From Epithemia pelagica (Eukaryota > Protista > Bacillariophyta): 64,000 bases of DNA. Location of the stretch: assembly GCA_946965045.2 (NCBI GenBank), contig OX337230.1:2790001-2854000 (forward strand), given 5' to 3'. The notes below the pieces were generated by a model. That model was not told the DNA's origin, did no database searches, and saw nothing but the letters and a program-made list of their open reading frames with translations. Position 1 is the stretch's first letter. Each line of letters begins with the position of its first letter. The position numbers and the translations under genes are program-made. Below are positions 5,554 to 26,603 of the stretch, one piece after another.

Positions 5554-5820
5554 TGTCGGAGTCAACGTGATGGGGGAACAAAGAAAAATGCACAAGAAGA
5601 AAGAGAGACTGGCGCGGGACCGCGATAAGCAGACGTGTGATCTTTGCGGTCAGTGGAATGTGGAAACCCTGTCTCTAGCAAAAGAGAGTAGGTAAGGTAG
5701 CTAGCGTAGACGGCTTATCTTGATTCATCAGCAGAGTACCTATGTATGGAAGACGCATGAACAAAGCAGTAGAAGGCTCCTCGTAGCGTTAAAATGCATT
5801 CTAAACGACGGAAATTTGGT

Positions 5821-7509: not shown

Positions 7510-8129
7510 CTTCCCAATTCTTCATTAAAAAGCAACAAGGTCAGGAAAATAGGCGAATACATTACGTCAATTTCCCTGCCAAAACTGCTAAAATTTTGCC
7601 GGCAGCCGCTCAACATAGCCGGATCTTTGTTTTCGCGTCGAAACCCAAAGAAACGATCTCACAGAGACGCTTAACTTACAATACTGCTAGAATCACTTTA
7701 GTCTCCTGATTCGATCGATTATGATGTTGGGCACCACAAGAAGGACGTCGATCTACTGGATCTGCTCGCTGCGAAGTACGCTTTGCTCTGTGCTGTGGGG
7801 AAAACAATGATCGCGTGCCTGGTGCCTGGATCTGGAATTTGGACTTTTTGCGCGAAAGAAAGTGTCGGTTTTCAGTTTTCGGTTTTCGGGTATCTGTTTG
7901 CCGAACTCGAGTCGTGCTACTGCTACGCTCTACGCTCAGACTCAGAACAAATAATGTACAGGCAACTTTACTTTACCTCAGAAAGTACGGTATGCCTGCC
8001 GTGGAGGTCGATTTGGGAGGGCACCACATACTTGTAGCCCCAAGCAGGGATGAATAGTCGGATCGCACATGTGTCGTGAATTCTAGGTGCATAGTCTTAT
8101 TCAGTTTGCAGACAAGAATCGAATCACTA

Positions 8130-8163
8130 CAAGCTGAGTTCAGACAGAATGTTCCTGACGTAG
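8130..8163 (+). repeat. Left TIR CAAGCTGAGTTCAGACAGAATGTTCCTGACGTAG
   Basis: Matches the reverse complement of 26226-26259 at 31 of 34 positions; preceded by TA. Confidence 0.9.
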
Positions 8164-8734
8164 CGCTCCAGTAGGAAATCTACGTAATCCGCGCGAGCCA
8201 TCCCCTTAATATAGCCCTTCTATTTATGCCTCTACCGTTCTACCAAAAATTGACCATGGTGAACGGTCCTTTTGACCGATCTCTTGCCAAATAGGAGACG
8301 GCTCCATGATCCCATGCTCTGAACCTCTTCTCCATTCATGGGTTGAGCATGGAGAACGATGTCGGCGCTGCATTCGTTTTGCAGGTGTGTTGAAGGTGGT
8401 CGCCGCGCGATTTACTACGGCGACTCACGGCAAAACTTGGTGCAACCAATGCACCTCTATTGTAGAATCGAATGATAGAAGATAGAACAAAGACTATGAA
8501 CACTTGTAGCGTTGTTCACGTCAAAAATTGATATTCTTCTCGTTAGATATATGGAAGTTGCGTCGTTCACAACAAAGATTGATGTTCTTTTCTTTGTTGT
8601 GACTCACACAGCCGTACCTGAACGCAATGTATTGTACGGTAAACGTAACACAACTATAGAATTAGATCGTATTCATAGAGAATGAAGATCCTACTCAAAT
8701 GATAATCATAAAACGCTACTACATTGTTCACTAT

Positions 8735-9307
8735 CTAGGCTTGTTGATGATTAAAGAAGAGATTTTGAAGCGGGTGCTTGAGCATCATCGCACCAAGCGA
8801 AATGTTGAAGCGATCCATATCCTTGCTGCCCATGTAGATTGTAACGACCTGGGGTTCCATGCAGGCTTTAGGGTTGATGGAGCAGCGTGTGTAGAGGCGG
8901 ATGCGTCCCATGGGAGGTCCGTTCTTGCTCGTCTTTCCAGAGACCTGGTCCAGGTGCGACAGAGCAATGAACCCAACTGGAACAACCAACGCTGGTTCCT
9001 CATGCTCGCTTGTTGTATCCCGGTCAAAGACTGCAATCCGTAGGTAGTCGGTTGCAAGCTCCCGCTGCACAAGCAGATGGCCACGGTCGACGATGTTGTG
9101 GCCAGTGTCCTTGTTTCTCGACATGGGCCCGATGAGCGCGCAAACATCGCTGGCATAAAAGCACGACTTGAACGGGAGACCAGCACCACCCTCACGGCCA
9201 TCCTCTTCGTTGAACTCGAACTTCGTCCTCATGTTGGTCATCTTGTTTCTTCTTCCTTGCCTCTTCCTGTCGTCTCTGTTTGATTGTTCCATTGCACGGC
9301 GGGTCAT
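8735..9307 (-). CDS. Hypothetical transposon cargo ORF (up to 190 aa)
   Basis: Open frame inside the TIRs, divergent from the 9479 gene. No recognisable motif. Confidence 0.4.
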   Translation of the reverse strand: MTRRAMEQSNRDDRKRQGRRNKMTNMRTKFEFNEEDGREGGAGLPFKSCFYASDVCALIGPMSRNKDTGHNIVDRGHLLVQRELATDYLRIAVFDRDTTSEHEEPALVVPVGFIALSHLDQVSGKTSKNGPPMGRIRLYTRCSINPKACMEPQVVTIYMGSKDMDRFNISLGAMMLKHPLQNLFFNHQQA

Positions 9308-9478
9308 TCGGAAGTTGCTTCATGCTGCAAGTTGATTTTGTGGCGCGCGCCGATATTGTTCACGAATGAGCGCGGGGGGATTCCCTAGATGACACAAGAA
9401 CGGAGAGCGGGCAACAATCAAACAAACAAACACAACAATCAAACGAACGAATCCCTATTGTGTTCTCACTTTCCAACG

Positions 9479-10385
9479 ATGCGCCAGACGTGTAGTGCTA
9501 CCAAACGAGCTGAGTCTGCGAAGAAGGAGCAGGAGGACTCCGCCGCAGCTCCCTCCACAACCGCATTTCCCTCCGACAAGGGAAACAAGGGAAACAAGGC
9601 AAACAAGAAAATGAAGACAAAGACGGCCGTGGACAACAAAACGTCAAAGAAGAAGAAGACGACGACGACGAAGTCTCCCGCTTCGACAAAGAAGCATGTG
9701 ACCTTCAACCTTGAGGGTCCTTCGTCGTGGCACGAGCGCGCAAAACAGTGGCAACTCACCATTGGGGATGAAGATGGTATCCCAGTGTTCTTCGTCAGCA
9801 ACAAGGACGTCGAATGCGCTAACCTGTCGGATATTGCGGCAGAGCTCCTTGCGATCGAGGCTGTCGGCAAAGAAGGTAAGTTTGATTGTTCATTGTTGGT
9901 TTTGAGTCTCCCTTTCTCACGACGCGCCCTCTGCTGCCACAGACACCAAACCCAACAGCAAGCCCGACAACAAGCCCGACAGCAAGCCCGAGAAGGAGAT
10001 CAAGAAGGAGGACGACGTCGAGAACAAGACTCCAGAGTCTTATGTGACCCCGAAGAAAGTAACTTCTTCCCCGAAGGTGGCGTCTCGAGCTTTCGCACTG
10101 ACCCCCTCCCAGAAGCATGCTTTCCAGCGTCGGATTGCTGAGGAACAGGTGAAGGAAAGTGGAGCGACAGACCCTCGCCAGACTTTGAATGAGTCGCTGG
10201 CATTGGGAGAAAACATCCCGTCGTCTCCTCCTTTGTTCTTTAGCAATCCTTCCCGTGCATACCGGACATCCATTGATTCGTATGCCGATGATGGATTTCT
10301 CGAGACCCAAGAAGACTTCATCGGTACGCAGCAAAACGGGCTTTTTGGTCCCGATTACTTGGATCATGAGGACGAGGCGTACTAG
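9479..10385 (+). CDS. Hypothetical spliced cargo gene (9479-9875, 9943-10385), ~279 aa, Lys-rich N-terminus
   Basis: Donor GTAAGT at 9876 and acceptor CAG at 9942 join ORF 9389 to ORF 10044 in frame (840 nt). KKKKTTTTK is NLS-like. Confidence 0.6.
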
Positions 10386-10893
10386 ATATCTACTGATGGA
10401 CGTTTTAGGTATCCTTAATCACTAAATATGAATCGATTTGTCATCATGGTAGTGCTTCTACAGTCATTCTTGTTGTGATTATCATCATTGTCGTCGTCCA
10501 AGTCCTCGTCATTGTCGTGGCTATCATTGTCGTCGTTGTATTGTAGTCGTCCTTGTTGTAGCTATCATCGCTCATCCTGTTTGTCCTCTTCATCATCATC
10601 GTCATCGTCGTTATCCAGCTTGCCAGTGTCGGTAGTTGGGTCCCGGTTTGCGGGCACGCCTCGTATGGATGTACGAGGGAGTTTGTGATTGGTCCCAGAC
10701 GAGCTATGATTCTTATCTCATATTTTGCGTTTTCGACACAACACGACAATGTACTAAAGTATAATATGAAGGAATAAATTAGTAAATCTTAATGTCATAC
10801 TGCAACTCAACGTACCATGGTATTCTTTTTCAACAATAACACACTTTCACCACAAGGAAAGATCTAAGTTTGATCGGCTTCTTTGTTCGCGAT

Positions 10894-13809
10894 CTAAATA
10901 CCAGGTTTTTTCGTAGCCAGAAGCACTCTACGATAATCACCCTGGACGGCAACGCGATGGCCATCGAGCGTAAGGTTAACCCGAATGATCCCACTTGGGC
11001 GATCACCAGGAATGTCAGGAATGTCCTTTTGATGGAAGTAGCACTCTGAAAGCCTTTGTCCAGAAGGTAGATTGTTGCTGTTCTTTGGCATGGGATCGTG
11101 GATGGTCCCATCTTTTCCTTGGTACACGTAAAAATGTGCACGTGGATTTCCCAGCTCTCCAGTCTTAAAGCCACCAGCATGGACAGTATCTCCTCGAACG
11201 AGGAGAAACTTGCCGTACGGGATTTGTACCACGTTACCCAACTCATGCGTATAGTTCTCGTGCTTCTCAGCACGGTAGCTCCACAATTCAATGGACATAC
11301 CCTCCTCCGTCAGGGGCATAAAAACAATGAAGGGGATGCGTTCCCGGAGTGGCAGATCTGAGAACGATCGCCGAGTCATCCTTTTGCTTTTTTGTTGCTT
11401 CCCGGATGGCGTTTTTGGACTCTCGGACATGTTTCCTGTTACGGCCGGGAACAAGAAGTCGATGTGAGGTTCTTGCACTTCTTCCCGAGTGGTCTTCATA
11501 AGCGAAAGGTGAATGCTCATTTGGTCCGCAAATGATTCATCTTTTGCGTAGTTCATTCCATGGAGAGCTGAGGCAAGAAACTGCTTGAAATCTGTCGTGA
11601 CTTTTTGGACATGTTCTGGGTCGCAGTCGTTGAAGTACCGAGTGTTGGCCACTATGCCCTCATGTTCCATCATCGCCATCAACAAATTTGGGGTGTAGTC
11701 TTGAACAGATTTGAAAAAGGTGCCCTTTCCTTTACTGTTCAGGTGTTTGCCTTTCCACACTTGCTCCAACAACTGGAGGAGGTCTGGCGGCGTTGTAAAA
11801 AAACAGCCTCGATAGATTTTGTTTTCACTATCGTATAGCGATTTGAAATACTTCTTGCGCAATTCTCTATTTTGCAACATCTGTTGCTTTTGCCATTCAC
11901 CCTCCTGCATTAACTCGTCGATCGCATTCATCTCCGGAGCAAAAGAATTGTCATCCGACATCTCCTGATCAAAAGAATTGTCATCCGTGGTGTCACTTTC
12001 TGAAAATTCTGGCAAGGCAATTACTCGTACTAACATTCCAGAAAGGGAGCGATCGGGTCGAGTGGCGGGTTGAGCTTGTGCTGCAGGTGGGACAGGATTG
12101 CTCGGACGCTCCGGTGAACCTACGACCGGCTGGGTCGTGCGTTGTTGTTGCTGCGATAAAGGCAGAGCCCCCTGGTAACCTCCTCCATAATGGGGTTGAT
12201 TATAGGACGGGGGATGCCCATGGTAATGCGGCTGAGGATGATGCGGCGGCGGAGGATGATGCGGCGGAGGATGATACGAAGGAGGATGATGATGATACGA
12301 AGGAGGATGATGATGATGATGCGGCGGAGGATGATACAAAGGAGGATGATGACGATGCGGTGGATCATAATATGGCGGAGGATGATGACGATGCGGTGGA
12401 TCATAATATGGCGGAGGATGAGGATGATGCGGTGGATCATAATCCGGCGGAGGATGAGGATGATACGGCGGAGGATGATGTGGTGGCAGCTGAGGGGGCG
12501 AATTGTAGTGCCCAGAAACGTCTTGCGGAGGAGGCGGAGAAGGAAGAGCAGGAGGACGAGCAACAGCAGCAACTGGGCGGAAAACAGTAGTAGAAGAGGT
12601 AGCGAAAGCCTTCTTTGTTTTTTTCCCGTCGTCTTCATTTTCATCACTGGGTCGACCGTGTTTCTTTCCCTCGTCTTCGTCGTCGTCACCTTTCGTCGAC
12701 GGTCGGATAACCTGTTCGGAGGACGTCGGCGATTCGTCCGAAAGGTTATAAAACAAAGACAGCTCGTCGCCCTTTTCGATCGGCTTGATTGCCTTGACTA
12801 GAAGATTCGGCATGATTCTCACGTTGTATTGATCATCCGATTCATCCGGTGGATTGTCTGTACCGTACCGATGGTGTAGGTGGTCGTTGATTAAGTGCAG
12901 CCCCATGCCGAAGTGATCGTCGTTGTCTGCTTGAAGCCTTCGATTGTCACGTCCGAACTGAATCGCGTACTCGTTGGGTACAACTGTCCGAGACGTGACG
13001 TCGTTTCCCGTGTACGCGCCAATCACTTCACCATCTTTGATTGTCCGAACTGCAAAAACGCCAAACCCGGCGCCTGGGAGTTTTGACTCCTTCACCTCAA
13101 ACAGAAGCACTTTTCCAAGGTAGATCTTGACTACCGGATTGTTCGCAAATGTGTAACCGACATGCTTGCCGATCGGGAAGGTATGTTTTCTGTTCTTCTT
13201 GACAGGGAGACCCATTCCACTTGAAAGTGGCACAATCTTCCCCTTTTGCAAGCCAGAACCGGGCTTCCGAATTGGAGCTTCTTGGACCGAAAAAGTGGCC
13301 GAAATCTTCCGTGAGACATACTCTCCCATAGCACAGGCAAGTACAGCACTGTCTTTGATCTTGGAGAGCGTCTTGAGGCCTTCGGTGAAAGTCCTGATTG
13401 GATCCCGTCCAGAACGAGAAGGGAGTTTCTCCACTTCCTCGACGCCTTTCTTGTAGTCCGCTGTGCGCGTATCGGTGAGGAGCTGCCGCATTTGAGTTTC
13501 CGAATACTGTTTGCTGTGGTCCTTCTCTGGATGGCCACGCCGAACATCTGCAAGCTTTTTATCCTTCACTTCGGCAAAGTCTTGATCCGAAAGAAACCGA
13601 TGGTGCTTTGTTGTTGTCGCTTCGTCTGTTGCTGCTGCTTCGGGTGCTGCGGCTGCTGCTGCTTCGGGCGCCGCTGCTGCTTTGGCTGACTGCTCTTCCG
13701 CTGCATCTATTGCAAGTATAAGAGCGTCAAGATTTCCTTTGTCACTCATGCTGTCTCGTTTTTGAGCGCCTGCTTTTGAATACTGTTTCTTAGGGCTTGG
13801 TTTCCCCAT
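10894..13809 (-). CDS. SET domain + Pro/His-rich linker + 2OG-Fe(II) dioxygenase-like fusion protein (~971 aa), transposon cargo
   Basis: SET motifs ESKLPGAGFGVFA, YTG, HLINDH, IEKGDELSLFYN (~12745-13110). Dioxygenase motifs QEPHIDF (HxD), GDTVHAGG (distal His), GNPRAHFY (Arg) (~11100-11560). Uninterrupted ORF. Confidence 0.8.
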   Translation of the reverse strand: MGKPSPKKQYSKAGAQKRDSMSDKGNLDALILAIDAAEEQSAKAAAAPEAAAAAAPEAAATDEATTTKHHRFLSDQDFAEVKDKKLADVRRGHPEKDHSKQYSETQMRQLLTDTRTADYKKGVEEVEKLPSRSGRDPIRTFTEGLKTLSKIKDSAVLACAMGEYVSRKISATFSVQEAPIRKPGSGLQKGKIVPLSSGMGLPVKKNRKHTFPIGKHVGYTFANNPVVKIYLGKVLLFEVKESKLPGAGFGVFAVRTIKDGEVIGAYTGNDVTSRTVVPNEYAIQFGRDNRRLQADNDDHFGMGLHLINDHLHHRYGTDNPPDESDDQYNVRIMPNLLVKAIKPIEKGDELSLFYNLSDESPTSSEQVIRPSTKGDDDEDEGKKHGRPSDENEDDGKKTKKAFATSSTTVFRPVAAVARPPALPSPPPPQDVSGHYNSPPQLPPHHPPPYHPHPPPDYDPPHHPHPPPYYDPPHRHHPPPYYDPPHRHHPPLYHPPPHHHHHPPSYHHHPPSYHPPPHHPPPPHHPQPHYHGHPPSYNQPHYGGGYQGALPLSQQQQRTTQPVVGSPERPSNPVPPAAQAQPATRPDRSLSGMLVRVIALPEFSESDTTDDNSFDQEMSDDNSFAPEMNAIDELMQEGEWQKQQMLQNRELRKKYFKSLYDSENKIYRGCFFTTPPDLLQLLEQVWKGKHLNSKGKGTFFKSVQDYTPNLLMAMMEHEGIVANTRYFNDCDPEHVQKVTTDFKQFLASALHGMNYAKDESFADQMSIHLSLMKTTREEVQEPHIDFLFPAVTGNMSESPKTPSGKQQKSKRMTRRSFSDLPLRERIPFIVFMPLTEEGMSIELWSYRAEKHENYTHELGNVVQIPYGKFLLVRGDTVHAGGFKTGELGNPRAHFYVYQGKDGTIHDPMPKNSNNLPSGQRLSECYFHQKDIPDIPGDRPSGIIRVNLTLDGHRVAVQGDYRRVLLATKKPGI
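12200..12560 (-). repeat. Coding tandem repeats (36-bp unit = PPPYYDPPHRHH, about 3 copies plus degenerate ones) in the Pro/His-rich linker
   Basis: Unit ggaggatgatgacgatgcggtggatcataatatggc recurs on the + strand from ~12341. Confidence 0.8.
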
Positions 13810-14219
13810 GGTCGAAACGCAAAAACTCGAAACACGAAACACAAGAAACACGAAACGCAGCATTCTCCTCAGCCCTCAGCTCACATTCCAAAAAAAATCT
13901 TGAGCTCACATACTAAAAAACGGTGAAGTTTTGGTATGTGGGCTGAGTTACTTAAGGATTTGCGTGCCAGTTTTGCGATGCGTGTTTGTTTTCGGAGAGG
14001 GAGGCGTGTTTCGCGCGAGGTCTGCTCCGAAAATCGTCCATTTTCTCGCTCTCTCACATTTTCGAGGTACTTACAAACTGATAATCCAACACGCAACACG
14101 AGCACGCAACACGGAAGTGATCATTGATACCAATAACTGACAAGAAATACATTCAATAAAATGGATTGCTGTTATAAATAGTTAAGTTACATGCATTTTG
14201 ATGATAAATGGAGATTAGA

Positions 14220-15692
14220 TCAGGTTTCTACTGCACCAGATCCTTGCGTTTCTCTCCAGAGACGTGAGATGAAGCCATGATCTTGGTCGAAGGCGGATCG
14301 GTGACACTTGATTGCTTTTGACATCTTTTCAATTTCGGCATACGAGAGGCCCGCAGCTGCATAGTCTCTGTTGTTGGAATTTTGATCGTATAACAAGTAC
14401 GCGAGCATATAGCGACGTGCCTTTGCTGACATTTTCCGCATGATTTCGGGTGTTGTTTTCTTCAGGCTCGCTGTCAAACATCGTAAAAAGGCAGCTTTGT
14501 CTTTCTTCTCATTCAGTGAGAAAGCACGAAAGACTTTTTTTGAGTAACCCCAGCCATACTCGATCCCCTCACCGGCCATTTCACAGTGATACTTGGTCGA
14601 TACGAGAATCTCGATCCTGCAACGATGTCGTTCAGACAAGTCTTCCGCCAGCTTCTCCATTGCAGATTTTTCGTTCTTGAAATCAGAGCATTCGCTCATC
14701 AGATGAACCATAGAGTACTTTTTGTAGTCCGCCTGATAGGCTTCTTTCACAGTCTTCTTATCCGCTTCCAGCCATGCATCTCTGGTTGTCTTGACGTACT
14801 TGATCATGTTGTTAGGGTCTATCCACCCCCGCTCCCATAACACTTGAAAGAGCCCTTTTGCAGCATTCATCCAGCCTTCCTCGATCACATCATCTTCAAT
14901 CACCGTTGCAATGTTGGAGCGTTTACAAAGGTCCTGTAGTTCACCAGCATTTTTCGATTGAAATGAACGTTGCATTCCAGGTCCCATGACCCGGACAAGT
15001 TTTGCCATGAGCTCCTTCTTTGTGAGGTTGCGCTTTTTCTTTCTACCAGTTCGGTGTGTATTCTTCGATGCGACACGCTGCGCGTCATTGAGACGATGGC
15101 CTTTTTTAGCAACTGGACCACGATCGTTCTCCTGATAGACGAGGTGTTGTACGTCACCAACTCGTAGTTTGTCGTCATGGTTGTACGGGCCAAGGCAAGC
15201 TTGATCAATAATTTGTGTGTCCCGCATGCTGGGAACAGCTCCTCCCCAGTCGTTATTCATGTTCAGAGCATTTAACCCATCGGATTGTTGTTTTCCATGA
15301 CCACTGCTTTGGTTGAACAAAAAGACAAAGTCATGGGCGGGGAACATGACCACAAGGCAATCGACAATATCCTCCAACTGCAAGGCCATGTATTCATAAT
15401 TCCAATATCCCTCTTTATCTGCTCCGTATTCAAAAAAGCGAGTGAACGGTTGGGCATTGGTAATTGGAGTCTTGGCAGTGTGACCATTGAGGTTCACTGC
15501 AGCCTCGGTAGAGACGTATTTGTTGTGTGTCGTATGTAGACGGAGTTCATTAATCCGAAATAGACTCGCAGCAAGCAACGGGTTTCCGTTCATAAGGAAG
15601 CCCCATGATCGGCTTACAAAAGCGCTGATCATCATCCCATGTCCATCATCCTTTGGCAGCATTTTAGTTGCGCCATCTTTAGTGTACCATGC
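14220..15692 (-). pseudogene. C-terminal half of the IS630/Tc1-like DDE transposase, cut off by the copia insertion
   Basis: PKDDGHGMMISAF, EGYWN, FLFNQSSGH (second catalytic position, here N), KGLFQVLWERGWID, KYHCEMAGEGIEYGWG (catalytic E). Joins the N-half in frame across the CATGC TSD. Confidence 0.85.
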
Positions 15693-16475
15693 TGTTAGAA
15701 TTCTCACCATCTATGGTGGTTAGATTCTACATCTCATCGATTCCCCATGTCACATAGCCTCGTGCTATCGCATCATGCCCTCTAGCTTCGAGCTATGTTT
15801 CCTAGCTTCGCGCTATATCGACCTATATTTCTTCGCAAATCATGAAAAGTGAGAATAGATTGACGAACTCACTCTCAAGACTAAATTGGGTCGTGCGGTA
15901 TTACAACGGACGTAAATTTGGCCGTTGCTCGGACACTGTACTAACGCCCTAAGCGTACGCGCCCGAAATCATCGAGCGTGCCCAAGCGACATCCGAGCGC
16001 TATCGGCATCTATCCGATCCAACGGTCTAAGTATCCCAAGCACGACACACGATCACGCGAGACCATATTTCCATTCCCACAATCTCCAAATTGTCAACAA
16101 GCTGCGCGCCATGAAAACAACTATGCCAACCCAAAGCAAGAGCTGTTGACCCTGTATATGTTATCCGCCCACATATACATGTCATATACATCACATGAAT
16201 CAACTCCAACTATTCCAAACCTGTTGCCGCCAAGAACCTATGATACATGACCCTTGGCAGGACCGAACATTTCACGTAGACCTATCGTAGTAATCAACAC
16301 ACAATCTAACAATATCACCATTTATCACATCCTCTTTTGTGTCCCGACTATCCTTCTGATAGACTTCGACTTGCTTGCTTCTCTGACCCTGAGAAGCTTG
16401 TATCGGTTGGTGACCTACCTGATTGTCTGCTCTACCGAGCATCAATGTCCCTACGATTCAGAAAGAATTGTAACA
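15693..16475 (+). repeat. 5' LTR (783 bp)
   Basis: TGTTAGAATT...AATTGTAACA; no difference from the 3' LTR seen by eye. Confidence 0.97.
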
Positions 16476-16486
16476 GATTAACAGTC
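16476..16486 (+). promoter_or_regulatory. Putative primer-binding site GATTAACAGTC, complementary to a tRNA-Asn(GUU) anticodon arm
   Basis: Abuts the 5' LTR. No TGGTATCA-type PBS is present. The reverse complement GACTGTTAATC matches the tRNA-Asn anticodon stem-loop as I recall it. Confidence 0.5.
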
Positions 16487-16511
16487 TCAAAGCTTATTTC
16501 CTTGTGGTTTC

Positions 16512-17291
16512 ATGGATACTAACGAGATTATCACTCCTGTACGACAGATCTATCGAGCCAACCTGCATCCCGGGCAGCCCGATACCCTGGTGCAGCAGGA
16601 ACTGGTGCCGACGCCGAAGGCAGCCAACACATCGGTCAACATCTCCGTCGACAGTTCCAACAGCAACCCATTCGAGACTCCAACCCAGCCTCACGCTCCG
16701 ATCCCTGCGCCGTTGCTTCGGCCCCCGAGTCCGCCTCGTCGGCTCGTCCCTTCTCGATCCCGTCGTACCACCCGGTTGATTGCTGATCATATCAAGTACT
16801 TCCGCCAACCAACTTGTTCGACCTTCGATCCCGAGATCATCCGTGGGGAGACCCAGATCGAACGCCAGTTCCAATCGGTGACCCACATCGTCGACCAAGA
16901 AGACATTGACCGTCTGAACGACCAACTTCACCGCTCTCCGAGGCGTCGCCTCATCTTTGCCGCCCTCTCGGGCAACCCCATCCGTACTGTCCACCTCCGC
17001 TTCCTAACCTTCGAGCGCCCAACTGGATACTACAATACCATCTACGTCGTGAACGCGACGACTTGCCCTCTGCCTCCTAACGTTGTACGCCTAGATAACT
17101 ACGTTGCCTACATCCACGAGGTCCATACCATCGAGGACCATCGTGCAACTATCTACCCTTTGCGTACCGAGGTCGAGAACCACCTGGCTGAAGGTGATAC
17201 CCCTTCTTCTGTTGCTTGTGCTGCCCCATCTGAGCCTGGAAGCGACTCTGATCATTCGGAAGAGGGTGAGGATTCAGAGACCGAAGCTTAA
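16512..17291 (+). CDS. Extra ORF (259 aa) of the copia element, upstream of gag-pol
   Basis: ATG-initiated sense ORF between the PBS and gag; Pro-rich N-part, acidic tail; no recognised domain. Confidence 0.65.
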   Translation: MDTNEIITPVRQIYRANLHPGQPDTLVQQELVPTPKAANTSVNISVDSSNSNPFETPTQPHAPIPAPLLRPPSPPRRLVPSRSRRTTRLIADHIKYFRQPTCSTFDPEIIRGETQIERQFQSVTHIVDQEDIDRLNDQLHRSPRRRLIFAALSGNPIRTVHLRFLTFERPTGYYNTIYVVNATTCPLPPNVVRLDNYVAYIHEVHTIEDHRATIYPLRTEVENHLAEGDTPSSVACAAPSEPGSDSDHSEEGEDSETEA

Positions 17292-17611
17292 TTACTCATA
17301 GTTAACTCCCGTCCTCTCAAAACCTTTCCAAGACTTAAACTCAACGCACATCCGGGTACCCTTGGTCGCACAACACGCCACACATTCCCGTCAAATCGCG
17401 AAAATTCGGCGAAAATTTGTTGAAACTCGGCGAAAATTTGTCGAAATCAACGGAAATTTCCAGGAGTCGCACATCACAACACACATCCGGGTATTACATA
17501 CGTGGTACATACGTGGCACACGTGGTACATCCGGGTTCACATCACATCACACATTAAATAAACCACATCACACCGCACATTAAATAAACATCGAACCAAC
17601 CAAATAACACC

Positions 17612-20600
17612 ATGGATCCTCAATCACCCAAGACACCTACGACTCCTAAGGGAGAAGATAACCAAGACAATGTCTCGGACACAGACCTATTCGACCACAT
17701 CATATTTACTGTCTGCCAATTTTTTACCAAAGAAAGGGCTGACTACTTAATGAAGTGGATGAAATACCATGGTTTTGAGAACATTACCCATGTTATCTCG
17801 TATATGCAAACTAATACCGAGGAATCCATGAAGGAACTGACACAATACAAGGTCAACAAACAGACACATGATCTACAAGGCCCCACAAGACAGCAGATCA
17901 AGCTCTTGGCTTATTGGGCCACATACAAGACCAATGAAATTCAAGACGAGCTATCCAATAGCGACTGGATGAACCTAACGAGGAAAGAGTTCAACACTTG
18001 GAGGATCAACACAGATTTCTCTAAGGGACCACCTAGCCAAGTCCCAATCTCGCCAATGAAGTCACCGTCATCTGTGAAATCTGTCAGCACAGTTACTGCC
18101 GCATCCCAATCTCAACAAGACCTTACAGCATTCAGAAAGGGAACTAAGCGCGACGCAACTGCATATGAGGTATTCAAGGATGAACGATACTACGATTCAT
18201 TCTGGCGTGTATTCAAGACTACAGCTAAGGCTCAAGGCCTATCCAACGTTCTGAATTTCGAATACACACCACCCCATGATGATGAGTATGCCGAAGAACT
18301 TTTTCAAGAGCAACAAGTATTTCTTTACTCCGTTCTTGTCCGTATCATTCAGACTGACCAAGGTCGAGCCTATGTACGTGAACATGAACATGATGAAGAT
18401 GCGCGTGCCGTATTGCAGAAGTTACACTCTTTGCATACTGAATCCGACCTAGCAAAGCGAGAAGTCCTCCGCTTAACCAACTACATTTCCAATTTACGTC
18501 TTGACGACACATGGCGCGGAACAACACGTCAATTTCTTCTACACTTTCAAGAGCAGCTACGTTTGCTAGACAATTTAGTGACATTGTCTGATCGCATCCC
18601 TGATCATACCAGGATGACCTTCCTCATGCAAGCTGTAGAAAAGGTACCTGATCTCCGCCGAGTCAAGATCTTGGATAATGTGGTGAACACCAAATCCGGT
18701 GCAAAATCCCTTTGCTATCAATCATACTTCCGTCTCCTTCTAGACGCAGCTTATGACCATGATCAAGCAACCCAGTCATCTGTTCATAGTCGCCGTCGAC
18801 ATGTCAAACAACATGAATCACTATATGGCCAAGATACAGATGCTGACATAACCTCACAAGATGATATGGAGTATCATGTCCACAACACCAAAGCGACATC
18901 TGAATCTCCATCCTCTTCGTCCAAGGTTAGTCTACCGCGTGACCTATGGTTCAAACTTTCTGAAGAAGATCGCAAGTTGATCATTGAATATAACAAGATG
19001 ATTCAAGCACCTTCATCAACAACACCGAGGACAGTACAAACACATGCCCTCGACATTGATCCGGAACCTGATCCTGATCCCAACCAAGTTGTATCTGATG
19101 ACGACTCACCTGGCGTAGTCACTGAGCATTCAGATGATTCAGATCCGGTTACACAATTTATCAACCAAGCCATGACGACTGATATCAATCACCCGGCAAC
19201 TGACCTGACTAGTGTTCTTTCTAACGCCAAGTCCAAGACGAGCAAGAAGGTTACTTTCAAAGCCAACATGCATAAACAAGCAGGACATGTTCCACGCTAT
19301 CTGTTTTCCAGGAAATCTACTTTACCAGGGAATCAATTGATTGACCGTGGTGCTAATGGAGGACTTGCTGGTTCTGACATGCGCATCCTTTCTAAGACTG
19401 GCCGCCATATCACTATTGTGGGTATTGATAACCATGAACTTACTGGACTTCCTGTCGTCACATGTGCCGCAAAGTTTGAGACCAATGATGGACCTATTGT
19501 CGGCATCTTCAATGAATATGCTTATTATGGGAAGGGCTTATCTATCCATGCTCCTGGTCAATTCGAGCATTTCGGACTTGCTGTTGATGAACGATCTGTT
19601 AAAGTTGATGGTAAACAACGCATCACTACACTTGATGGTCGTGCCATACCCCTTCACATCAAGGATGGGTTAGCCTACATCCACTCCTTGGGTATCCCCA
19701 GCGACGATGACATGGATACCTTACCTCAGATCATCTTCACGTCACCCGACACATGGGATCCTGGTGTTCTGGACCATTCGTATTCTCCCACACCCTCTGA
19801 CAATGATCCTGATTGGAAACACGTCAAGACTGATGGTAGTATGTCGAACCATCCATATGACAACTATGGGGAGTACACTGATCGTGTTGTTTGTAACCTC
19901 AATCTCCTTTTGGATCTCCCATACGATCATGGACCTGACGACGCACCCTTCTTTTCTATCTATGCTGACGCAGAAGGTAATGATCCTACACTTCATGCCT
20001 CTGTCCACCGTCGTTACCAGGAAGCGTATGACTGGAAGAAGTTCCGTCCATTCTTTGGTTGGCAATCTGAAGATGTTATTGCCGATACGTTCAAGCACAC
20101 TACACGTAATGGTAGCATTACTTTTGACCACGACACCCTCAAGAAACATTTCAAGGCTCGCAATCCGGTCCTTAATATACCTCGACGCCATGAACCCGTT
20201 GCTACTGACTCGGTTTTCTCCGACACCCCTGCTGTTGACCATGGTGGTAAAGTCGCACAAATCTTTGTTGGTCGAGATACTCTGGTTACTGATATCTATG
20301 GGATCAAGTCAACCAAACAGTTTGTCAATACTCTTCAGGACAACATCCGGTTTCGTGGTGCCATGGAGACTCTTATCAGTGATGGTGGTTCATCTCTCAT
20401 CTCTCAAAAGGTTAAAGACATTCTTCGCACTTTGCTTATTGGGGAGTATCGATCCGAACCTTATCATCAACACCAGAATAAGGCTGAAAACCGTTACCAG
20501 ACCGTTAAACGTATGACCAACGCTCTCATGAATGCCACTGGTTGCCCTGCCAACACCTGGCTTCTTTGCCTTGAGTATGTCTGTGACTTATTGAACCATA

Positions 20601-23299
20601 CGTCATCACCCACCCACTCCGGTCGCACTCCTCTTGAGGCTCTCTCCGGACGCCCACCCGACATTACTCATCTCTTGTTCTTTCCTTTCTGGGATGAGGT
20701 TTACTATCGTGTCGACCCCGCTGAACCCAATTCCGGTTCATATCCATCTTCTTCTGATGAGAAACTTGGCCACTGGGTTGGTTTTGCTCACAACGTTGGT
20801 GATTCTTTTACTTGGAAGATTCTCACCCAGGATAACCAGATCATCTACCGTTCTGCCGTTCGCCGTGTTGAATCCACTACACCTAACCTACGTGTGGATC
20901 GACCTTCAGGGGAGGATTCGTCTGACAAGGATGACAATGATAAGCAAGCTGACACTGTCTTCATTCGCAGTGATAGTGAAGATCCATCCAAACCAATGCC
21001 CACGATCGATTTTGACGACATGATAGGACGCACATTCCTATGCGACACAGAAGAAAATGGGGAGCGACACCGTGCACGTGTCATCAAACGAGTCATTGAT
21101 CTTAATGAAGAAGCAACGAAACAGGAAGAACGTGTCAAGTATATCTACCGAAAGACAAATTCTGATGTTGATGAGATGATATCCTATAATCAACTCATGG
21201 AGTATATCGAACGAGATAACCAAGCTCAAACCTCTGGAGATAATCTTTTCAGGTTCAGGGACGTCATTGCCCATCAAGGCCCACTGAACACAACTGATCC
21301 AGATTACAAGGGGAGCAAATATAATTTGCTTGTTGATTGGGAAACTGGGGAGACTACCTATGAACCTTTATCACTCATCGCCAATGATGATCCGATCACT
21401 GTAGCAATTTATGGAAAGAAACATGATTTACTCAACGAACCTGGATGGAAGCATTTGAAACGTTATGTCAAAACAAGCAAACGTCTCATTCGAGCAGCCA
21501 AACAGTCAAGGATTAAACAAGTTCACCATTCCGTCAAGTATAAGTTTGGATTCCAAGTACCACGCAATTATGAGGAAGCTGTCACTCTTGATAAACAACA
21601 TGGCAACACAAAGTGGCAAGATGCAACAGAATTAGAATTGTCACAGATCCAGTCCTACAAGACATTCAAGGATTTTGGGAAAGCCATCTTCATTAAAGGG
21701 AAAGTATCCAATGCACCTGAAGGATATCATAAGATACGTGTACATCTTGTCTTTGACGTAAAACATGATGGACGACATAAAGCAAGACTTGTCGCAGATG
21801 GACATCTCACAAAAGAACCTGTTGAGACAATCTATTCAGGTGTTGTTTCCATTCGCAACCTCCGCATTGCCTTATTCCTGGGTACTTTGAATGACTTGGA
21901 AATATGGGGAGCAGATATTGGAAACGCATATCTGGAAGCCTTGACAGGGGAGAAACTTTTCATTGTCGCAGGACCTGAATTCAAGGAATTAGAAGGTCAC
22001 ATCCTGATTATATACAAGGCACTTTATGGATTGAAGTCATCAGGCGCACGCTGGCATGATGTCTTATTCGATGTTTTGACAGACATGGGATTTTCACCAA
22101 GCAAAGCAGATCCGGATATCTGGATGAGGAAGGCACCTGGAGAAGACTGTTACGAATACGTTGCCGTATACGTTGATGACTTAGCCATTATTTCTACTGA
22201 TCCTGGGAATATCTGCAAGATCCTGAAGGAGAAATACAACTTCAAACTCAAAGGAGATGGACCTATTGATTTCCACTTGGGATGTTGTTACACCAAGGAT
22301 TCTGATGGAACATTAGTAGCAGATCCAAGACGCTACATTGGTAAGATGATGGACACTTTCGAACGAATCTTCAAGGAGAAACCCAAGAAAGCCAAAACAC
22401 CTCTTATTGGTGGAGACCATCCTGAATTGGACGATTCTGAGCTCCTTGATGAAGAAGGTACTAACCATTTCCAAACTCTGATTGGACAACTTCAATGGGT
22501 GATCACTATTGGTCATTTCGACGTCTTCACCGCTACAATGACGCTATCACGCTTTCGTGCTGCTCCGAGGAAAGGACATCTTGATAGAGCCAAGCGTATC
22601 TATGGATACCTTGCACATCTCCCAGAAGGCGCAATCAGATTTAGGATTGGAGAGCCTGATTATTCAAGTCTTCCTACCCAAGAATTTGATTGGACTCGCA
22701 CTGTCTATTCGAATGCAAGTGAACGTATTCCTGAAGACTGCCCAACACCTCTTGGCCGCTATGTTACTACAACTCATTATGTTGATGCCAATCTCATGCA
22801 TGACATAGTCACTGGTAAATCCGTCACTGCTGTTCTACATTTGTTGAACGGAACACCTATTGACTGGTACAGCAAGAGACAGAGCACAGTGGAAACTGCT
22901 ACCTATGGATCCGAGTTCGTGGCTGCAAGGACAGCAATAGATCAGATTACAGAATTACGACATTCTCTCCGCTACCTTGGAGTACCTATCCGAGAGCGAA
23001 GTTACATGTACGGAGATAACAGATCTGTTGTGCTCAATGCAACCGTTCCTCATTCCATACTATCCAAGAGACACCATCTTCTGTCATACCACCGAGTTCG
23101 TGAAGCCATCGCAGCAAAGTATGTTGCATTCTACTGGAAAGATGGAAAGACCAACCCCGCCGATATCCTTAGCAAACATTGGGATTTCGTATCTATCTGG
23201 CCCATGCTCAAGCCATTGTTGTTTTGGAAAGGAGAAGTTCAAGACCTCAACAAATCCAATGATGACAAGGCTGAAACGACGAGTTGTGGGGAGTGTTAG
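17612..23299 (+). CDS. Copia Gag-Pol polyprotein (1895 aa)
   Basis: Protease LIDRGANGG. Integrase core (TDSVFSD..ISDGG..AENRYQ). RT KARLVADGH, ADIGNAYL, ALYGLKSSG, YVDDL. RNase H YVDAN, SEFVAA, YGDNRS, ADILSK. Confidence 0.97.
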   Translation: MDPQSPKTPTTPKGEDNQDNVSDTDLFDHIIFTVCQFFTKERADYLMKWMKYHGFENITHVISYMQTNTEESMKELTQYKVNKQTHDLQGPTRQQIKLLAYWATYKTNEIQDELSNSDWMNLTRKEFNTWRINTDFSKGPPSQVPISPMKSPSSVKSVSTVTAASQSQQDLTAFRKGTKRDATAYEVFKDERYYDSFWRVFKTTAKAQGLSNVLNFEYTPPHDDEYAEELFQEQQVFLYSVLVRIIQTDQGRAYVREHEHDEDARAVLQKLHSLHTESDLAKREVLRLTNYISNLRLDDTWRGTTRQFLLHFQEQLRLLDNLVTLSDRIPDHTRMTFLMQAVEKVPDLRRVKILDNVVNTKSGAKSLCYQSYFRLLLDAAYDHDQATQSSVHSRRRHVKQHESLYGQDTDADITSQDDMEYHVHNTKATSESPSSSSKVSLPRDLWFKLSEEDRKLIIEYNKMIQAPSSTTPRTVQTHALDIDPEPDPDPNQVVSDDDSPGVVTEHSDDSDPVTQFINQAMTTDINHPATDLTSVLSNAKSKTSKKVTFKANMHKQAGHVPRYLFSRKSTLPGNQLIDRGANGGLAGSDMRILSKTGRHITIVGIDNHELTGLPVVTCAAKFETNDGPIVGIFNEYAYYGKGLSIHAPGQFEHFGLAVDERSVKVDGKQRITTLDGRAIPLHIKDGLAYIHSLGIPSDDDMDTLPQIIFTSPDTWDPGVLDHSYSPTPSDNDPDWKHVKTDGSMSNHPYDNYGEYTDRVVCNLNLLLDLPYDHGPDDAPFFSIYADAEGNDPTLHASVHRRYQEAYDWKKFRPFFGWQSEDVIADTFKHTTRNGSITFDHDTLKKHFKARNPVLNIPRRHEPVATDSVFSDTPAVDHGGKVAQIFVGRDTLVTDIYGIKSTKQFVNTLQDNIRFRGAMETLISDGGSSLISQKVKDILRTLLIGEYRSEPYHQHQNKAENRYQTVKRMTNALMNATGCPANTWLLCLEYVCDLLNHTSSPTHSGRTPLEALSGRPPDITHLLFFPFWDEVYYRVDPAEPNSGSYPSSSDEKLGHWVGFAHNVGDSFTWKILTQDNQIIYRSAVRRVESTTPNLRVDRPSGEDSSDKDDNDKQADTVFIRSDSEDPSKPMPTIDFDDMIGRTFLCDTEENGERHRARVIKRVIDLNEEATKQEERVKYIYRKTNSDVDEMISYNQLMEYIERDNQAQTSGDNLFRFRDVIAHQGPLNTTDPDYKGSKYNLLVDWETGETTYEPLSLIANDDPITVAIYGKKHDLLNEPGWKHLKRYVKTSKRLIRAAKQSRIKQVHHSVKYKFGFQVPRNYEEAVTLDKQHGNTKWQDATELELSQIQSYKTFKDFGKAIFIKGKVSNAPEGYHKIRVHLVFDVKHDGRHKARLVADGHLTKEPVETIYSGVVSIRNLRIALFLGTLNDLEIWGADIGNAYLEALTGEKLFIVAGPEFKELEGHILIIYKALYGLKSSGARWHDVLFDVLTDMGFSPSKADPDIWMRKAPGEDCYEYVAVYVDDLAIISTDPGNICKILKEKYNFKLKGDGPIDFHLGCCYTKDSDGTLVADPRRYIGKMMDTFERIFKEKPKKAKTPLIGGDHPELDDSELLDEEGTNHFQTLIGQLQWVITIGHFDVFTATMTLSRFRAAPRKGHLDRAKRIYGYLAHLPEGAIRFRIGEPDYSSLPTQEFDWTRTVYSNASERIPEDCPTPLGRYVTTTHYVDANLMHDIVTGKSVTAVLHLLNGTPIDWYSKRQSTVETATYGSEFVAARTAIDQITELRHSLRYLGVPIRERSYMYGDNRSVVLNATVPHSILSKRHHLLSYHRVREAIAAKYVAFYWKDGKTNPADILSKHWDFVSIWPMLKPLLFWKGEVQDLNKSNDDKAETTSCGEC

Positions 23300-24076
23300 A
23301 ATTCTCACCATCTATGGTGGTTAGATTCTACATCTCATCGATTCCCCATGTCACATAGCCTCGTGCTATCGCATCATGCCCTCTAGCTTCGAGCTATGTT
23401 TCCTAGCTTCGCGCTATATCGACCTATATTTCTTCGCAAATCATGAAAAGTGAGAATAGATTGACGAACTCACTCTCAAGACTAAATTGGGTCGTGCGGT
23501 ATTACAACGGACGTAAATTTGGCCGTTGCTCGGACACTGTACTAACGCCCTAAGCGTACGCGCCCGAAATCATCGAGCGTGCCCAAGCGACATCCGAGCG
23601 CTATCGGCATCTATCCGATCCAACGGTCTAAGTATCCCAAGCACGACACACGATCACGCGAGACCATATTTCCATTCCCACAATCTCCAAATTGTCAACA
23701 AGCTGCGCGCCATGAAAACAACTATGCCAACCCAAAGCAAGAGCTGTTGACCCTGTATATGTTATCCGCCCACATATACATGTCATATACATCACATGAA
23801 TCAACTCCAACTATTCCAAACCTGTTGCCGCCAAGAACCTATGATACATGACCCTTGGCAGGACCGAACATTTCACGTAGACCTATCGTAGTAATCAACA
23901 CACAATCTAACAATATCACCATTTATCACATCCTCTTTTGTGTCCCGACTATCCTTCTGATAGACTTCGACTTGCTTGCTTCTCTGACCCTGAGAAGCTT
24001 GTATCGGTTGGTGACCTACCTGATTGTCTGCTCTACCGAGCATCAATGTCCCTACGATTCAGAAAGAATTGTAACA
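23294..24076 (+). repeat. 3' LTR (783 bp), preceded by a short purine tract (GGGGAG)
   Basis: Duplicate of 15693-16475; followed by the TSD CATGC. Confidence 0.97.
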
Positions 24077-25917
24077 CATGCCTTAGACGAGAAGGAAAAC
24101 TGCTTGTAGATCGATTCGTCCTGGCCGATGAGGATGACAGGTTTGCGGTCGGAGGGAAACCTGTGTGACAAGTTTCCATTGTGAATTGTGTTTTCTGGTT
24201 TGATGTACCGTTCAAATTCGCTTGGGAAGGCATCAACATGGTACTCCCGCATCTGCTTGCCTGTTGTTACATCAGTGTACTCAAATACAAAGCTGTTTGG
24301 CAAGAGCTTCTCCTTGCCCGCATTCCCTTTGTTTTTAAGTTTGATTGCATCCTCGGTAGGGAGCTGCACCCACCGATACGACAGCTCTTCCCACTTAAAG
24401 TACTTCTTGACAAAAGCAGCTCTGTGGGCAACATTCTCAGCATTTTCGTGTCGATCAGTGAAGTATGTTTTCGTGTGTTCCTTGAACACGAACCCTGCAG
24501 CAGCAATACATCGCCACGCTGTGCTTTGCGAAATGGTGGAAAGCTTCATCAATGCCAAGAAGGCCTCGTACGATACTGGCGTTGCATTCGTATCCATGCA
24601 CTCTTGTACGATCATGGTATGCATATCCGGAAGCAATGTTGTCCTCAGGTACATTAGAGCAGACTCTGTTGTAAGAGTGCTCAGGTTTTCCTTTGCCCAG
24701 CATTCAAACTTTACCTTTGCTTCAGGTATGTGAACGAATAAGACGGGCGATGGCTCTTTCCCAATATGAACGTGGTAGTTGGGATGAGGGAAACTGTCGT
24801 TTTCCCGAAAGTACCTGTGAAAACGAGCAATGGTCTTGGGATGTTTTTTTACTTTTTCACCATAAATCTGTTCCATTTTGCTAATGGCTTCGCTTATGCA
24901 GTTCAGCCATGTACGACCGTGTGGCATATCAAGCAACGCTATCTTATAAGAAAGTTGTAAATACGTTGCCTTGAGCAGTACCCTCTGTTGCTGTTCCTGG
25001 TTGAGGGGGAAGATGTCTCCCTTGTTAACCACATTCGGAAGTGCCTCCACGTTGGAAATGGCCCTTTCAAGGGTTTCTATCCATCGCTCAAGATTTCGTT
25101 TTGACGATCCTGGAGAATCGCATTTGCCGGCAAAGAGCCTACGGTTCCTTGGCTCATCAAAATAGGCGCTTTCCATTTGTTGCGATAGACCTTGGATCAT
25201 CTCACTCTCGAAAACTGAAAAACCAATCGGCAAACTCTGTGGATGGTCATGGCCGATTTTGTCTGTGGCCAATTCAGGATGTTGGATTGCTCCAACAAGC
25301 ACCTGATTTGTGTTGTCGTGAGGTGGTGACGTTTGCATTTCGGTAGGGCTGTCTCCAATTTGTGGCGGTTGACCATGTTGCTGCGTTGCAGTGCTCTTGA
25401 TTGCTGGTGGAGTTGAAGTGTTTCTTGCTTGCTTGGATGTATTTAGCGTGCCTTCACGCAACCCTGGTGACTCTTCGTTCCTTCGCTTCGTTGGCTTCGC
25501 TCGTCCCGACCGCCGAATCGTGTTCGTTTCTGCAGCCTCCAGCCATTCTTGGTGATCGTCGAATATCACTGGCCGTGTTGTTGTGTCGGAGCTTACATAA
25601 AAGAATGTGTATCTTTTCTTTTGGATTGTGACTTTGTGGCGGTACCAGCCAAACTTGTTTGGTTCCGACGTCTCAGCTTCGAAACAGAGTTTAAGGACAA
25701 CATCTTTAGACAAAACAAGATGCAGTCTGGTTGTTGACAGTCCTGGCAACCAAGTGCTCATGTATCCTACAATGTTGGTGTCTTAGATCCACTTGTCGCA
25801 GAATCCAAACGAGGTTGGGGAGCATCGCGTCTTGAAGACGTCAAGAACCTCTTTCGTAGATAAACTTCGTTCCATCCGAGACTGTGTTGCGTCGGTTGGG
25901 TCCGATGATCGTGTCAT
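24077..25917 (-). pseudogene. N-terminal half of the IS630/Tc1-like transposase (HTH region and first catalytic Asp); an in-frame TAA at 25783-25785 may interrupt the original N-terminus
   Basis: STAWRCIAAAGFVFKEHTKTYFTDRHE resembles the winged-HTH region of IS630-type enzymes; LIGQDESIYKQ holds the first Asp. The frame stays open upstream to ATG 25917 apart from one TAA. Confidence 0.82.
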
Positions 25918-25928
25918 TGAGGATGATG

Positions 25929-26225: not shown

Positions 26226-26259
26226 CTACGTCAGGAACATACTCCCTGAACTCAGCTTG
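26226..26259 (-). repeat. Right TIR
   Basis: ctacgtcaggaacatactccctgaactcagcttg, followed by TA. Confidence 0.9.
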
Positions 26260-26603
26260 TAATCCTCATGAAGCACCACCGCTGGGGGATACCGCACCAA
26301 AAACCACAACCACAACCGTCCCAAGCCCACCGGACGGCACCAACGATCTACGATAGAGATTCATCGCTAGCTGGAGTCATTGCTTCAAATCCATTTCGGA
26401 GTTGGAGACTTACAGATCACAAATCTTGGGTGCAGAAAAGCGTTTGCGTTAGGTTATAGAGTGGAGTTTTTTCGGTGACTGAGTATAACGGGACATCATG
26501 CAGCAGCAAACTCCGTTGAAATCTTCCAGACCAAATAGTGGACGAATCCCCGTTTCACCAGCGGCAACAGAGGTAAGTTTGAAAAGAGTTATTGTTGTAA
26601 AGG

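Follow-up and report, generated by a model that had tools for sequence, protein, structure and literature searches.

A Diatom Transposon Gene That Joins a Minimal SET Domain to a 2-Oxoglutarate-Fe(II) Oxygenase

Introduction

Why would a DNA transposon carry a gene that joins a SET domain to an oxygenase, and what might such a protein do for the element? The question is raised by a locus of the diatom Epithemia pelagica, within a stretch of 64,000 nucleotides that we refer to as the window (GenBank assembly GCA_946965045.2, contig OX337230.1, positions 2,790,001 to 2,854,000 of the forward strand; coordinates given below without a prefix count from its first nucleotide). On the minus strand, at 10894..13863, an uninterrupted open reading frame (ORF) of 989 amino acids plus a stop codon encodes a minimal SET domain, a low-complexity linker, and a domain of the 2-oxoglutarate (2OG)-Fe(II) oxygenase fold. 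We find that a 9.7-kb transposon with terminal inverted repeats (TIRs) and insertion at TA carries this ORF as an accessory (cargo) gene, and that the whole fusion is also carried by a second, unrelated kind of transposon in the same genome. On balance, we favor the view that this SET-oxygenase cargo acts as a chromatin-directed nuclear enzyme for the benefit of the element.

The fusion gene

A preliminary description of the locus had proposed that one intact ORF of a transposon protein combines a methyl writer and an oxidative eraser. As to its architecture, that proposal is borne out: the frame is intact, both domains are present, and every motif quoted in support of them was recovered. The ORF is slightly longer than was described, as the earlier start at 13809 corresponds to Met19, the second methionine of the 989-residue frame. 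Both candidate start methionines are kept in a paralog of 40% identity, and translation may begin at either. The SET region contains GAGFGVFA (residues 264-271), AYTGN (283-287), LINDH (324-328), and GDELSLFY (365-372), and the oxygenase region contains PHID (H800 and D802), TVHAGG (H895), and GNPR (R908). Neither domain was rejected by the searches described below, the SET domain being recovered by its Pfam profile and the double-stranded beta-helix by the structural comparison programs Foldseek and VIA.

Four regions can be distinguished along the protein. Residues 130-265 (13069..13476, minus strand) form a conserved N-terminal region, in which many columns are invariant across paralogs of about 40 to 47% identity; it had no Pfam match, and its AlphaFold2 model reached a predicted local distance difference test score (pLDDT) of 32. 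The SET domain (residues 266-373; 12745..13068, minus strand) follows directly, and no Cys cluster flanks its core on either side in the fusion ORF. The linker (residues 374-661; 11881..12744, minus strand), delimited by composition, consists of an acidic stretch, a basic bipartite patch (residues 399-418; 12610-12669, minus strand), and a low-complexity tract rich in proline, histidine, and tyrosine (60 P, 32 H, and 14 Y per 170 residues). The oxygenase domain occupies residues ~662-935 (11059..11880, minus strand). The consensus of the basic patch, GKKRGR...KKxKK, is kept across subfamilies and may be a nuclear localization signal (NLS); because this patch is conserved, we think a nuclear role probable. 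The P/H/Y-rich tract differs among subfamilies in length and sequence, with the frame kept throughout. Three ORFs that overlap the linker (12078-12590 and 12190-12801 on the plus strand and 12120-12689 on the minus strand) were rejected as genes and are by-products of the low-complexity repeat.

The frame through both domains is preserved in more than 20 copies across subfamilies with unequal linker lengths, and open frames of 895 to 993 amino acids cover both halves in every subfamily. This retention is the best available evidence on the point, and it suggests that the ORF yields a single polypeptide.

A divergent SET domain

Membership of the N-terminal half in the SET family rests on sequence profiles. 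Pfam SET (PF00856) matched the window protein over the full length of the profile (positions 1-105; E = 1.1e-6; 29.5 bits against a curated cut-off of 22.4). Each of six paralogs, namely five that are 45 to 57% identical to the window protein over the SET region and the near-identical P0001, matched independently (best E = 7.2e-8), such that scores over the whole set ranged from 29.5 to 32.4 bits. When a profile of the six was compared with the PDB, the strongest matches were exclusively SET or PR domains, with fungal EZH2 first (E = 1e-4) and MECOM, PRDM16, MLL1, PRDM5/12, a Plasmodium SET protein, and Legionella LegAS4 behind it. Weak matches of PRDM2_PR, MECOM, and PRDM to the SET region agree with this picture, as do its language-model neighbors, which are SET/PR proteins of 143 to 170 amino acids from haptophytes and giant viruses (score, 0.96) and whose small size suits the minimal SET domain of the earlier description. 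Residues G266-F-G268, Y284, G286, E367, and L370 are invariant across the SET paralogs, and F371-Y372 of the ELxLFY motif are present in all subfamilies but one.

The Asn-His pair of the canonical (R)FINHSCxPN motif is absent, and the corresponding segment reads LINDH, INDP, or INDY. N326 is invariant, and so is D327, which stands in place of the His in every copy. The NH-to-ND change, which had been noted earlier for the single ORF as a possible cause of reduced activity, is present in every subfamily; as judged from this conservation, it is a fixed and selected feature and not a product of decay.

The same change gives rise to an alternative in which the SET half is catalytically dead and binds a lysine-bearing tail or recruits partners, leaving the oxygenase as the sole enzyme. 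Mutation of the NH-motif His inactivates SUV39H1, and the loss of this His from every subfamily, together with the lack of pre-SET and post-SET Cys clusters, speaks for this possibility. However, PR-type SET enzymes that lack the NH pair can be active. Moreover, the GxG and YxG motifs are invariant, the Tyr of ELxLFY is kept in all subfamilies but one, and the pairwise ratio of nonsynonymous to synonymous substitution rates (dN/dS) in the SET half is 0.13 to 0.43, a combination that would fit a retained S-adenosylmethionine site. We consider a dead SET half unlikely, while giving it real weight.

A PhyH/P4H-like oxygenase

Residues 642-989 matched no Pfam model, even at E <= 10, including those for JmjC, TET/JBP, AlkB, PhyH (PF05721), and 2OG-FeII_Oxy. 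An exhaustive phmmer search with the oxygenase region retrieved 224 representative relatives, 59 of them at E <= 1e-10, and a Pfam scan of 72 family members (63 + 9) found no SET domain and no informative domain. The AlphaFold2 model, built on a 63-sequence alignment, had a pLDDT of 85.6 and a predicted template modeling score of 0.84. Searched against the PDB with Foldseek, it gave 238 matches at E <= 0.001; the 50 listed, headed by FtmOx1, AndA, AsqJ, and KanJ (probability, 1.0), are without exception Fe(II)/2OG oxygenases. In a VIA comparison against 48,161 chains, 80 chains had Z scores of at least 8, the highest being AsqJ (12.3), a Pseudomonas putida prolyl hydroxylase (11.5), TlxIJ (11.4), AndA (11.3), PHD2 (10.8), and Tpa1 (10.7). 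Neighbors in the ESM Atlas, both by shape and by features, belong to PhyH and 2OG-FeII_Oxy clusters.

The residues expected of an active site are in place. Among 11 paralogs, the most distant at 40% identity, H800, D802, H895, and R908 never vary; across the 63-member family, H895 is invariant and each of the other three is kept in 90% or more of the sequences. EPHIDF (11455..11472, minus strand) holds H800 and D802, the proposed iron ligands of the HxD motif, and DTVHAGG...GNPRAHFY (11128..11190, minus strand) holds H895, the distal His, and R908, the Arg that is proposed to bind 2OG. The family profile pairs H895 and R908 with the VVHAGG...GKPR segment of FtmOx1 (E = 0.011), in which the paired His is the FtmOx1 iron ligand H205. 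We conclude that the C-terminal domain, as modeled, is a genuine 2OG-Fe(II) oxygenase in which the HxD...H...R site is complete, and that it represents an undescribed family resembling PhyH proteins and prolyl 4-hydroxylases (P4H). It is PhyH-like by structure and by its language-model neighbors, and not a PhyH member by sequence.

The identification of this domain as an oxidative eraser was not supported. No Pfam model of the JmjC, TET/JBP, AlkB, or PhyH families matches it, its best structural neighbors are PhyH-like small-molecule oxygenases and prolyl hydroxylases (Z of 11 to 12), the top 50 VIA matches of the 48,161 chains include neither JmjC nor TET/JBP, and no TET/JBP structure is among the best 50 Foldseek matches. 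By profile and fold ranking, the domain belongs neither to JmjC nor to TET/JBP, nothing marks it as an AlkB-type demethylase, and the predicted fold suggests something other than a classical demethylase.

A related alternative is that the oxygenase oxidizes DNA or RNA bases (5-methylcytosine [5mC], N6-methyladenine, or thymine), as AlkB, TET/JBP, and thymine-7-hydroxylase (T7H) do, and so removes or rewrites methylation of the element's DNA while the SET half sets a histone mark, which corresponds to the writer and eraser of the preliminary description. AlkB (Z of 9.2), ALKBH1 (the OsALKBH1 chain; 9.8), and Neurospora T7H (9.9) do match structurally, at ranks near that of AspH (9.0 to 9.2). 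In addition, a basic disordered loop (residues 815-833) lies within the oxygenase domain, and fungal transposons carry TET/JBP enzymes to that end (PMC12730594). Against this, PhyH-like and prolyl-hydroxylase chains score higher (Z of 11 to 12.3) than these base oxidases, the best 50 matches are without TET/JBP or JmjC, no Pfam model of a nucleic-acid oxygenase matches, and the cellular members of the family are ordinary single-domain genes. We regard base oxidation as quite unlikely.

The carrier transposon

That the gene is transposon-borne, as had been proposed, is established by TIRs, a TA duplication, and a DDE transposase. The element proper spans 8130-26259 and measures 9,741 bp without a nested insertion; homology to other copies extends from 8128, or slightly earlier where the flanks permit, to ~26262, with a gap at ~15699-24077. 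Its ends are 34-bp TIRs at 8130..8163 (plus strand; CAAGCTGAGTTCAG...) and 26226..26259 (minus strand), 31 of the 34 bases of the left end being identical to the reverse complement of the right end. The same transposon end was seen in at least six copies, whose flanks are unrelated. Empty sites, represented by two copies of the target repeat that bear no insertion, read ...GAATCAC-TA-ATCYTCATGA..., with a single TA. Since the filled site has TA on both sides (8128..8129 and 26260..26261), the target-site duplication is TA.

Intact copies encode a transposase in a single ORF of 1109 amino acids (L035:1324-4650), upstream of the fusion gene and on the same strand. Residues D607, D746, and E990 are invariant in the transposase family, and its named relatives are from Fragilaria crotonensis and Ectocarpus. 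The transposase has no direct Pfam match. Its profile aligned by hhalign with that of a family bearing PF13358 (DDE_3), with a probability of 100%, an E value of 8.6e-53, and the D, D, and E motifs in register; members of the partner family match Pfam DDE_3 at 39 to 42 bits. On the basis of the TA duplication, the TIRs, and the kinship with DDE_3, we assign the element to the IS630/Tc1-mariner superfamily, in which it represents a divergent lineage of very large size. It is a cut-and-paste element that was active recently.

Copies, selection, and module exchange

The genome examined for copies comprises 60.5 Mb. It contains at least 12 cargo gene copies that are 96 to 99% identical, about half of them without stop codons. 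There is also a second subfamily, 93 to 95% identical in the N-terminal half and only 67% identical in the oxygenase half, as well as additional subfamilies at 40 to 48% identity. Pairwise dN/dS in the oxygenase half is 0.21 to 0.65, and, taken with the values for the SET half, this places both halves under purifying selection.

A sliding comparison with a subfamily 2 copy (G000:C9:2520000-2536577) gave mostly 96 to 100% nucleotide identity, somewhat lower at the outer termini. The exception is a block at ~10526-12400 of 75 to 85% identity, which coincides exactly with the oxygenase and linker. Because the divergence is confined to this block, the oxygenase module must have been exchanged between element lineages, by a recombinant swap of that module alone. 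Three oxygenase variants, ~70 to 73% identical in protein, are present.

Beyond this genome, word-indexed searches, in which the oxygenase region and the N-terminal and SET region served as queries, found the fusion only as P0001, a protein of 967 amino acids; it is encoded on an ENA contig of 1.24 Mb where the element is laid out in the same way. The source of P0001 is probably the same or a sister organism, and these searches are weak evidence that the fusion is restricted to it.

One fusion, two transposon superfamilies

Ten fusion copies of 40 to 47% identity each lie 2.06 to 2.36 kb from a match to PF13843 (piggyBac transposase), in divergent orientation. One of these matches was confirmed on its ORF of 160 amino acids (E = 2.5e-9; 37.3 bits against a cut-off of 22.4), and the assignment to piggyBac is based on this match in the adjacent ORF and on the ten repeated adjacencies. 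The whole fusion is accordingly carried by both Tc1/mariner-like and piggyBac-like elements in one genome. In a maximum-likelihood tree of the oxygenase domain, the versions from the two carriers form one clade (100/99), within which each carrier's set is a clade of its own. The root of this tree is not fixed, and the direction of capture is inferred.

Outside the transposon clade lies a single-copy gene of 385 amino acids that encodes the oxygenase domain alone, with no SET domain (G000:C1:6216079-6217236; L053:1354-2511). It groups with Epithemia clementina KAL7564762.1 and is likely the cellular counterpart of the cargo domain. Another relative, P0006, is located among housekeeping genes whose order is conserved in three metagenome contigs, and further relatives are MMETSP transcripts. 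The oxygenase family thus extends to single-domain cellular genes, both of diatoms and of other microbial eukaryotes. The expected link of the homologs to transposons holds in part: the oxygenase-only relatives are cellular genes, whereas the SET-oxygenase fusion itself was found only in transposons.

Beside one diverged fusion gene, three minus-strand ORFs of 492, 160, and 448 amino acids nearly abut (L021:4873-8208; G000:C9:1355872-1359207), of which the middle one alone matches the piggyBac transposase profile. They are probably one gene with short introns or frameshifts. The 448-residue ORF by the piggyBac match had no meaningful hit in the PDB or Pfam. There is also a piggyBac-linked fusion variant of 758 amino acids (G000:C1:662313-664550 and C1:705288-707489; L042 and L043), which retains the SET domain and linker and stops ~100 residues into the oxygenase; its sister is shortened further, to 500 amino acids.

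The sharing of one fusion between two carriers bears on a further alternative, in which the target is not chromatin. The substrate would instead be either the element's own transposase or a host factor of translation or stress, in the manner of prolyl hydroxylases that act on EF-Tu or ribosomal proteins, and the effect would be to tune transposition and not silencing. In its favor, the structural matches of highest score include the P. putida P4H (solved with EF-Tu), PHD2, and Tpa1 (Z of 10.7 to 11.5), and the fusion gene follows the transposase gene immediately and is read from the same strand. However, one fusion accompanies both a Tc1-like and a piggyBac-like transposase, which are unrelated to each other; this disfavors a transposase-specific substrate, and the NLS-like basic patch is conserved. 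We think a target of this kind rather improbable. A neutral passenger, that is, a captured host fragment that hitch-hikes with no gain for the element, was already disfavored and is very improbable: cut-and-paste elements do acquire host genes, this copy resides in a dead element, and several copies have stop codons, but the fusion is intact in at least three Tc1-like subfamilies and in piggyBac-like elements at 40 to 47% identity, with invariant catalytic residues and dN/dS below 1.

A candidate chromatin-directed enzyme

The reading that we prefer is that the fusion protein serves its carriers as a nuclear accessory enzyme. In the simplest history, a cellular oxygenase would have been captured once and fused once to a small SET gene, and the fused gene would later have moved between transposon superfamilies, as it helps the elements that carry it. 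The protein would most likely act on chromatin proteins, on the element copies themselves or in their vicinity. For the SET part, we envisage methylation or binding of a lysine-bearing protein; the oxygenase part would hydroxylate or otherwise oxidize a protein residue or, less probably, a nucleic-acid base. The net effect may be to bias host silencing or transposition toward the element. We infer a benefit to the element from the retention of the gene across two superfamilies and from published parallels (see below); by analogy with the latter, an anti-silencing role is plausible.

Several observations weigh against a chromatin-directed enzyme. The substrate cannot be read from the sequence, and the nearest solved oxygenases act mostly on small molecules, so that the chromatin target is assumed. 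With ND in place of the canonical NH in every copy, methyltransferase activity may be weak, altered, or absent. AlphaFold2 applied to residues 1-428, with a nine-sequence alignment, gave a pLDDT of 31.9. Values of dN/dS of 0.5 to 0.65 among the closest oxygenase variants indicate mild constraint only. The transposase gene of the copy in the window is broken by a Copia element, such that this copy is no longer autonomous, with its fusion gene intact. Lastly, the public sequencing runs in which the sequence occurs number three, all from one study and all genomic assemblies, with contigs of up to 509 kb.

A much broader version of this reading can be envisaged, in which the fusion is a self-contained chromatin-rewriting module that protects against silencing and is traded as a unit between the Tc1/mariner-like and piggyBac-like superfamilies. 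The module would be kin to PAG2 and PAG3 of red algae (see below) and would belong to an ancient toolkit with which transposons across the algae counter silencing. At the core of that toolkit would be a PhyH-like oxygenase that acts on protein or nucleic acid and is of a type new to epigenetics. We hold this to be doubtful.

Relation to known systems

The closest parallels are accessory genes of Plavaka transposons in the red alga Bostrychia moritziana. PAG2 combines an N6-adenine methylase with a SET domain, and PAG3 combines a ParB-like domain with a 2OG oxygenase that has no InterPro match and for which the best HHpred hit is 2OPW. The PAG genes are mobile between superfamilies, being carried by Plavaka, Zisupton, and Mutator elements, and Helitrons too have captured 2OG oxygenases and SET proteins (bioRxiv 10.1101/2025.02.11.637652). 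Likened by description, both systems place a SET protein and a 2OG oxygenase resembling the PhyH type on DNA transposons, in a cassette that has moved between superfamilies. We take 2OPW to be the PhyH-type protein PHYHD1. The systems differ in that the red-algal domains reside in two proteins with other partners, whereas here they form one polypeptide, in which no methylase or ParB domain was detected, and in their carriers, which here are Tc1/mariner-like and piggyBac-like. For three longer oxygenase relatives (P0022, P0035, and P0040), a likeness to PAG3 was considered; their N-terminal parts match nothing relevant in the PDB, and their contigs are short.

Fungal DNA transposons of many unrelated lineages carry and exchange TET/JBP dioxygenases, for which counter-silencing has been proposed (Kojima 2025, PMC12730594); earlier work on Kyakuja-Dileera-Zisupton elements is among the studies cited there. 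Common to both cases is a 2OG-Fe(II) dioxygenase that travels as transposon cargo and passes between lineages. The fungal enzymes act on 5mC, however, whereas the diatom oxygenase is identified as TET/JBP neither by its profile nor by fold ranking and is fused to a SET domain. For stramenopiles, HarbingerS and MuDR transposons of Phytophthora are described as encoding a SET histone methyltransferase (Repbase Reports 2014, as cited in PMC12730594). These elements resemble ours in being DNA transposons of a stramenopile with SET cargo and, so far as that citation describes them, differ in superfamily and in having SET alone, with no oxygenase.

At the level of the individual domains, the SET half resembles chlorovirus vSET and the PR domains of PRDM proteins, which likewise have a small SET core without Cys-rich pre-SET and post-SET regions. 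Compared by sequence, it differs from them in that it is embedded in a 989-residue multidomain protein and has ND for NH. The oxygenase shares its double-stranded beta-helix, and an HxD...H...R set in the same places, with FtmOx1, AsqJ, AndA, KanJ, and prolyl 4-hydroxylases, but identity to these is 8 to 15%, and its setting is transposon-borne and nuclear-looking rather than metabolic. In primates, the host gene SETMAR consists of a SET domain and a captured mariner-type transposase domain. SET and mariner-type transposases have thus been linked in evolution there as well, whereas here the mobile element bears SET in a separate cargo gene.

Our literature search found no fused SET-oxygenase gene of a transposon and no such cargo in diatoms. 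Transposon cargo with SET and with oxygenase domains is known, even with both together as separate genes; what is new is the fusion, the carriers, and the host group. Provided that it is active, the protein would be the first case found of a lysine-methyltransferase-type domain and a 2OG oxygenase in one transposon-encoded polypeptide. Two unrelated transposase types that share the fusion in one diatom genome are the pattern expected of cargo selected for the benefit of mobile elements. An active protein would also offer a tractable entry to the contest between diatom transposons and host silencing, and a function for an undescribed oxygenase family with ordinary cellular members in diatoms and other protists.

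Insertion site and neighboring features

The element is inserted in a repeat of ~120 bp that resembles a miniature inverted-repeat transposable element (MITE) (GTACCCCCAAGCAGGG...CCCGCTGGGGG), is present at ~8034-8127 and 26262-26290 of the window, and has more than 20 copies in the genome. A tRNA was considered as the insertion target and rejected, since ARAGORN found none and the target is the MITE-like repeat. Assignment to CACTA/EnSpm, which the left junction CACTACAAG could suggest, was likewise rejected, as other copies differ before TACAAG and the empty site shows the TA duplication.

The nested insertion is a Copia-type long terminal repeat (LTR) retrotransposon at 15693..24076 (plus strand) that is not part of the element. 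It was recognized from the jump in homology, its TG...CA ends, and an RVT_2-matching ORF, and it is bounded by a 5-bp duplication, CATGC, at 15688-15692 and 24077-24081. Its ORF of 1895 amino acids (17612-23299) matches RVT_2 and, weakly, rve, and the retrotransposon looks complete. By homology to intact copies, it severs the C-terminal part of the transposase (14220..15692, minus strand) from the N-terminal part (24077..25761, minus strand).

Two more ORFs lie within the element, one of 250 amino acids at 9389-10141 (plus strand) and one of 190 amino acids at 8735-9307 (minus strand), and they are intact in most of the copies examined. The 250-residue ORF has no Pfam match, and a gene of that length was called at the matching relative position on the ENA contig (L049). 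The element is flanked by host genes, namely a gene for AMP deaminase at 3290-5595 (minus strand), in two ORFs of 324 and 410 amino acids that are presumably split by an intron, and ORFs with POLO-box (2134-3201), UBC (26604-27344), and WD40 (28584-29474) assignments.

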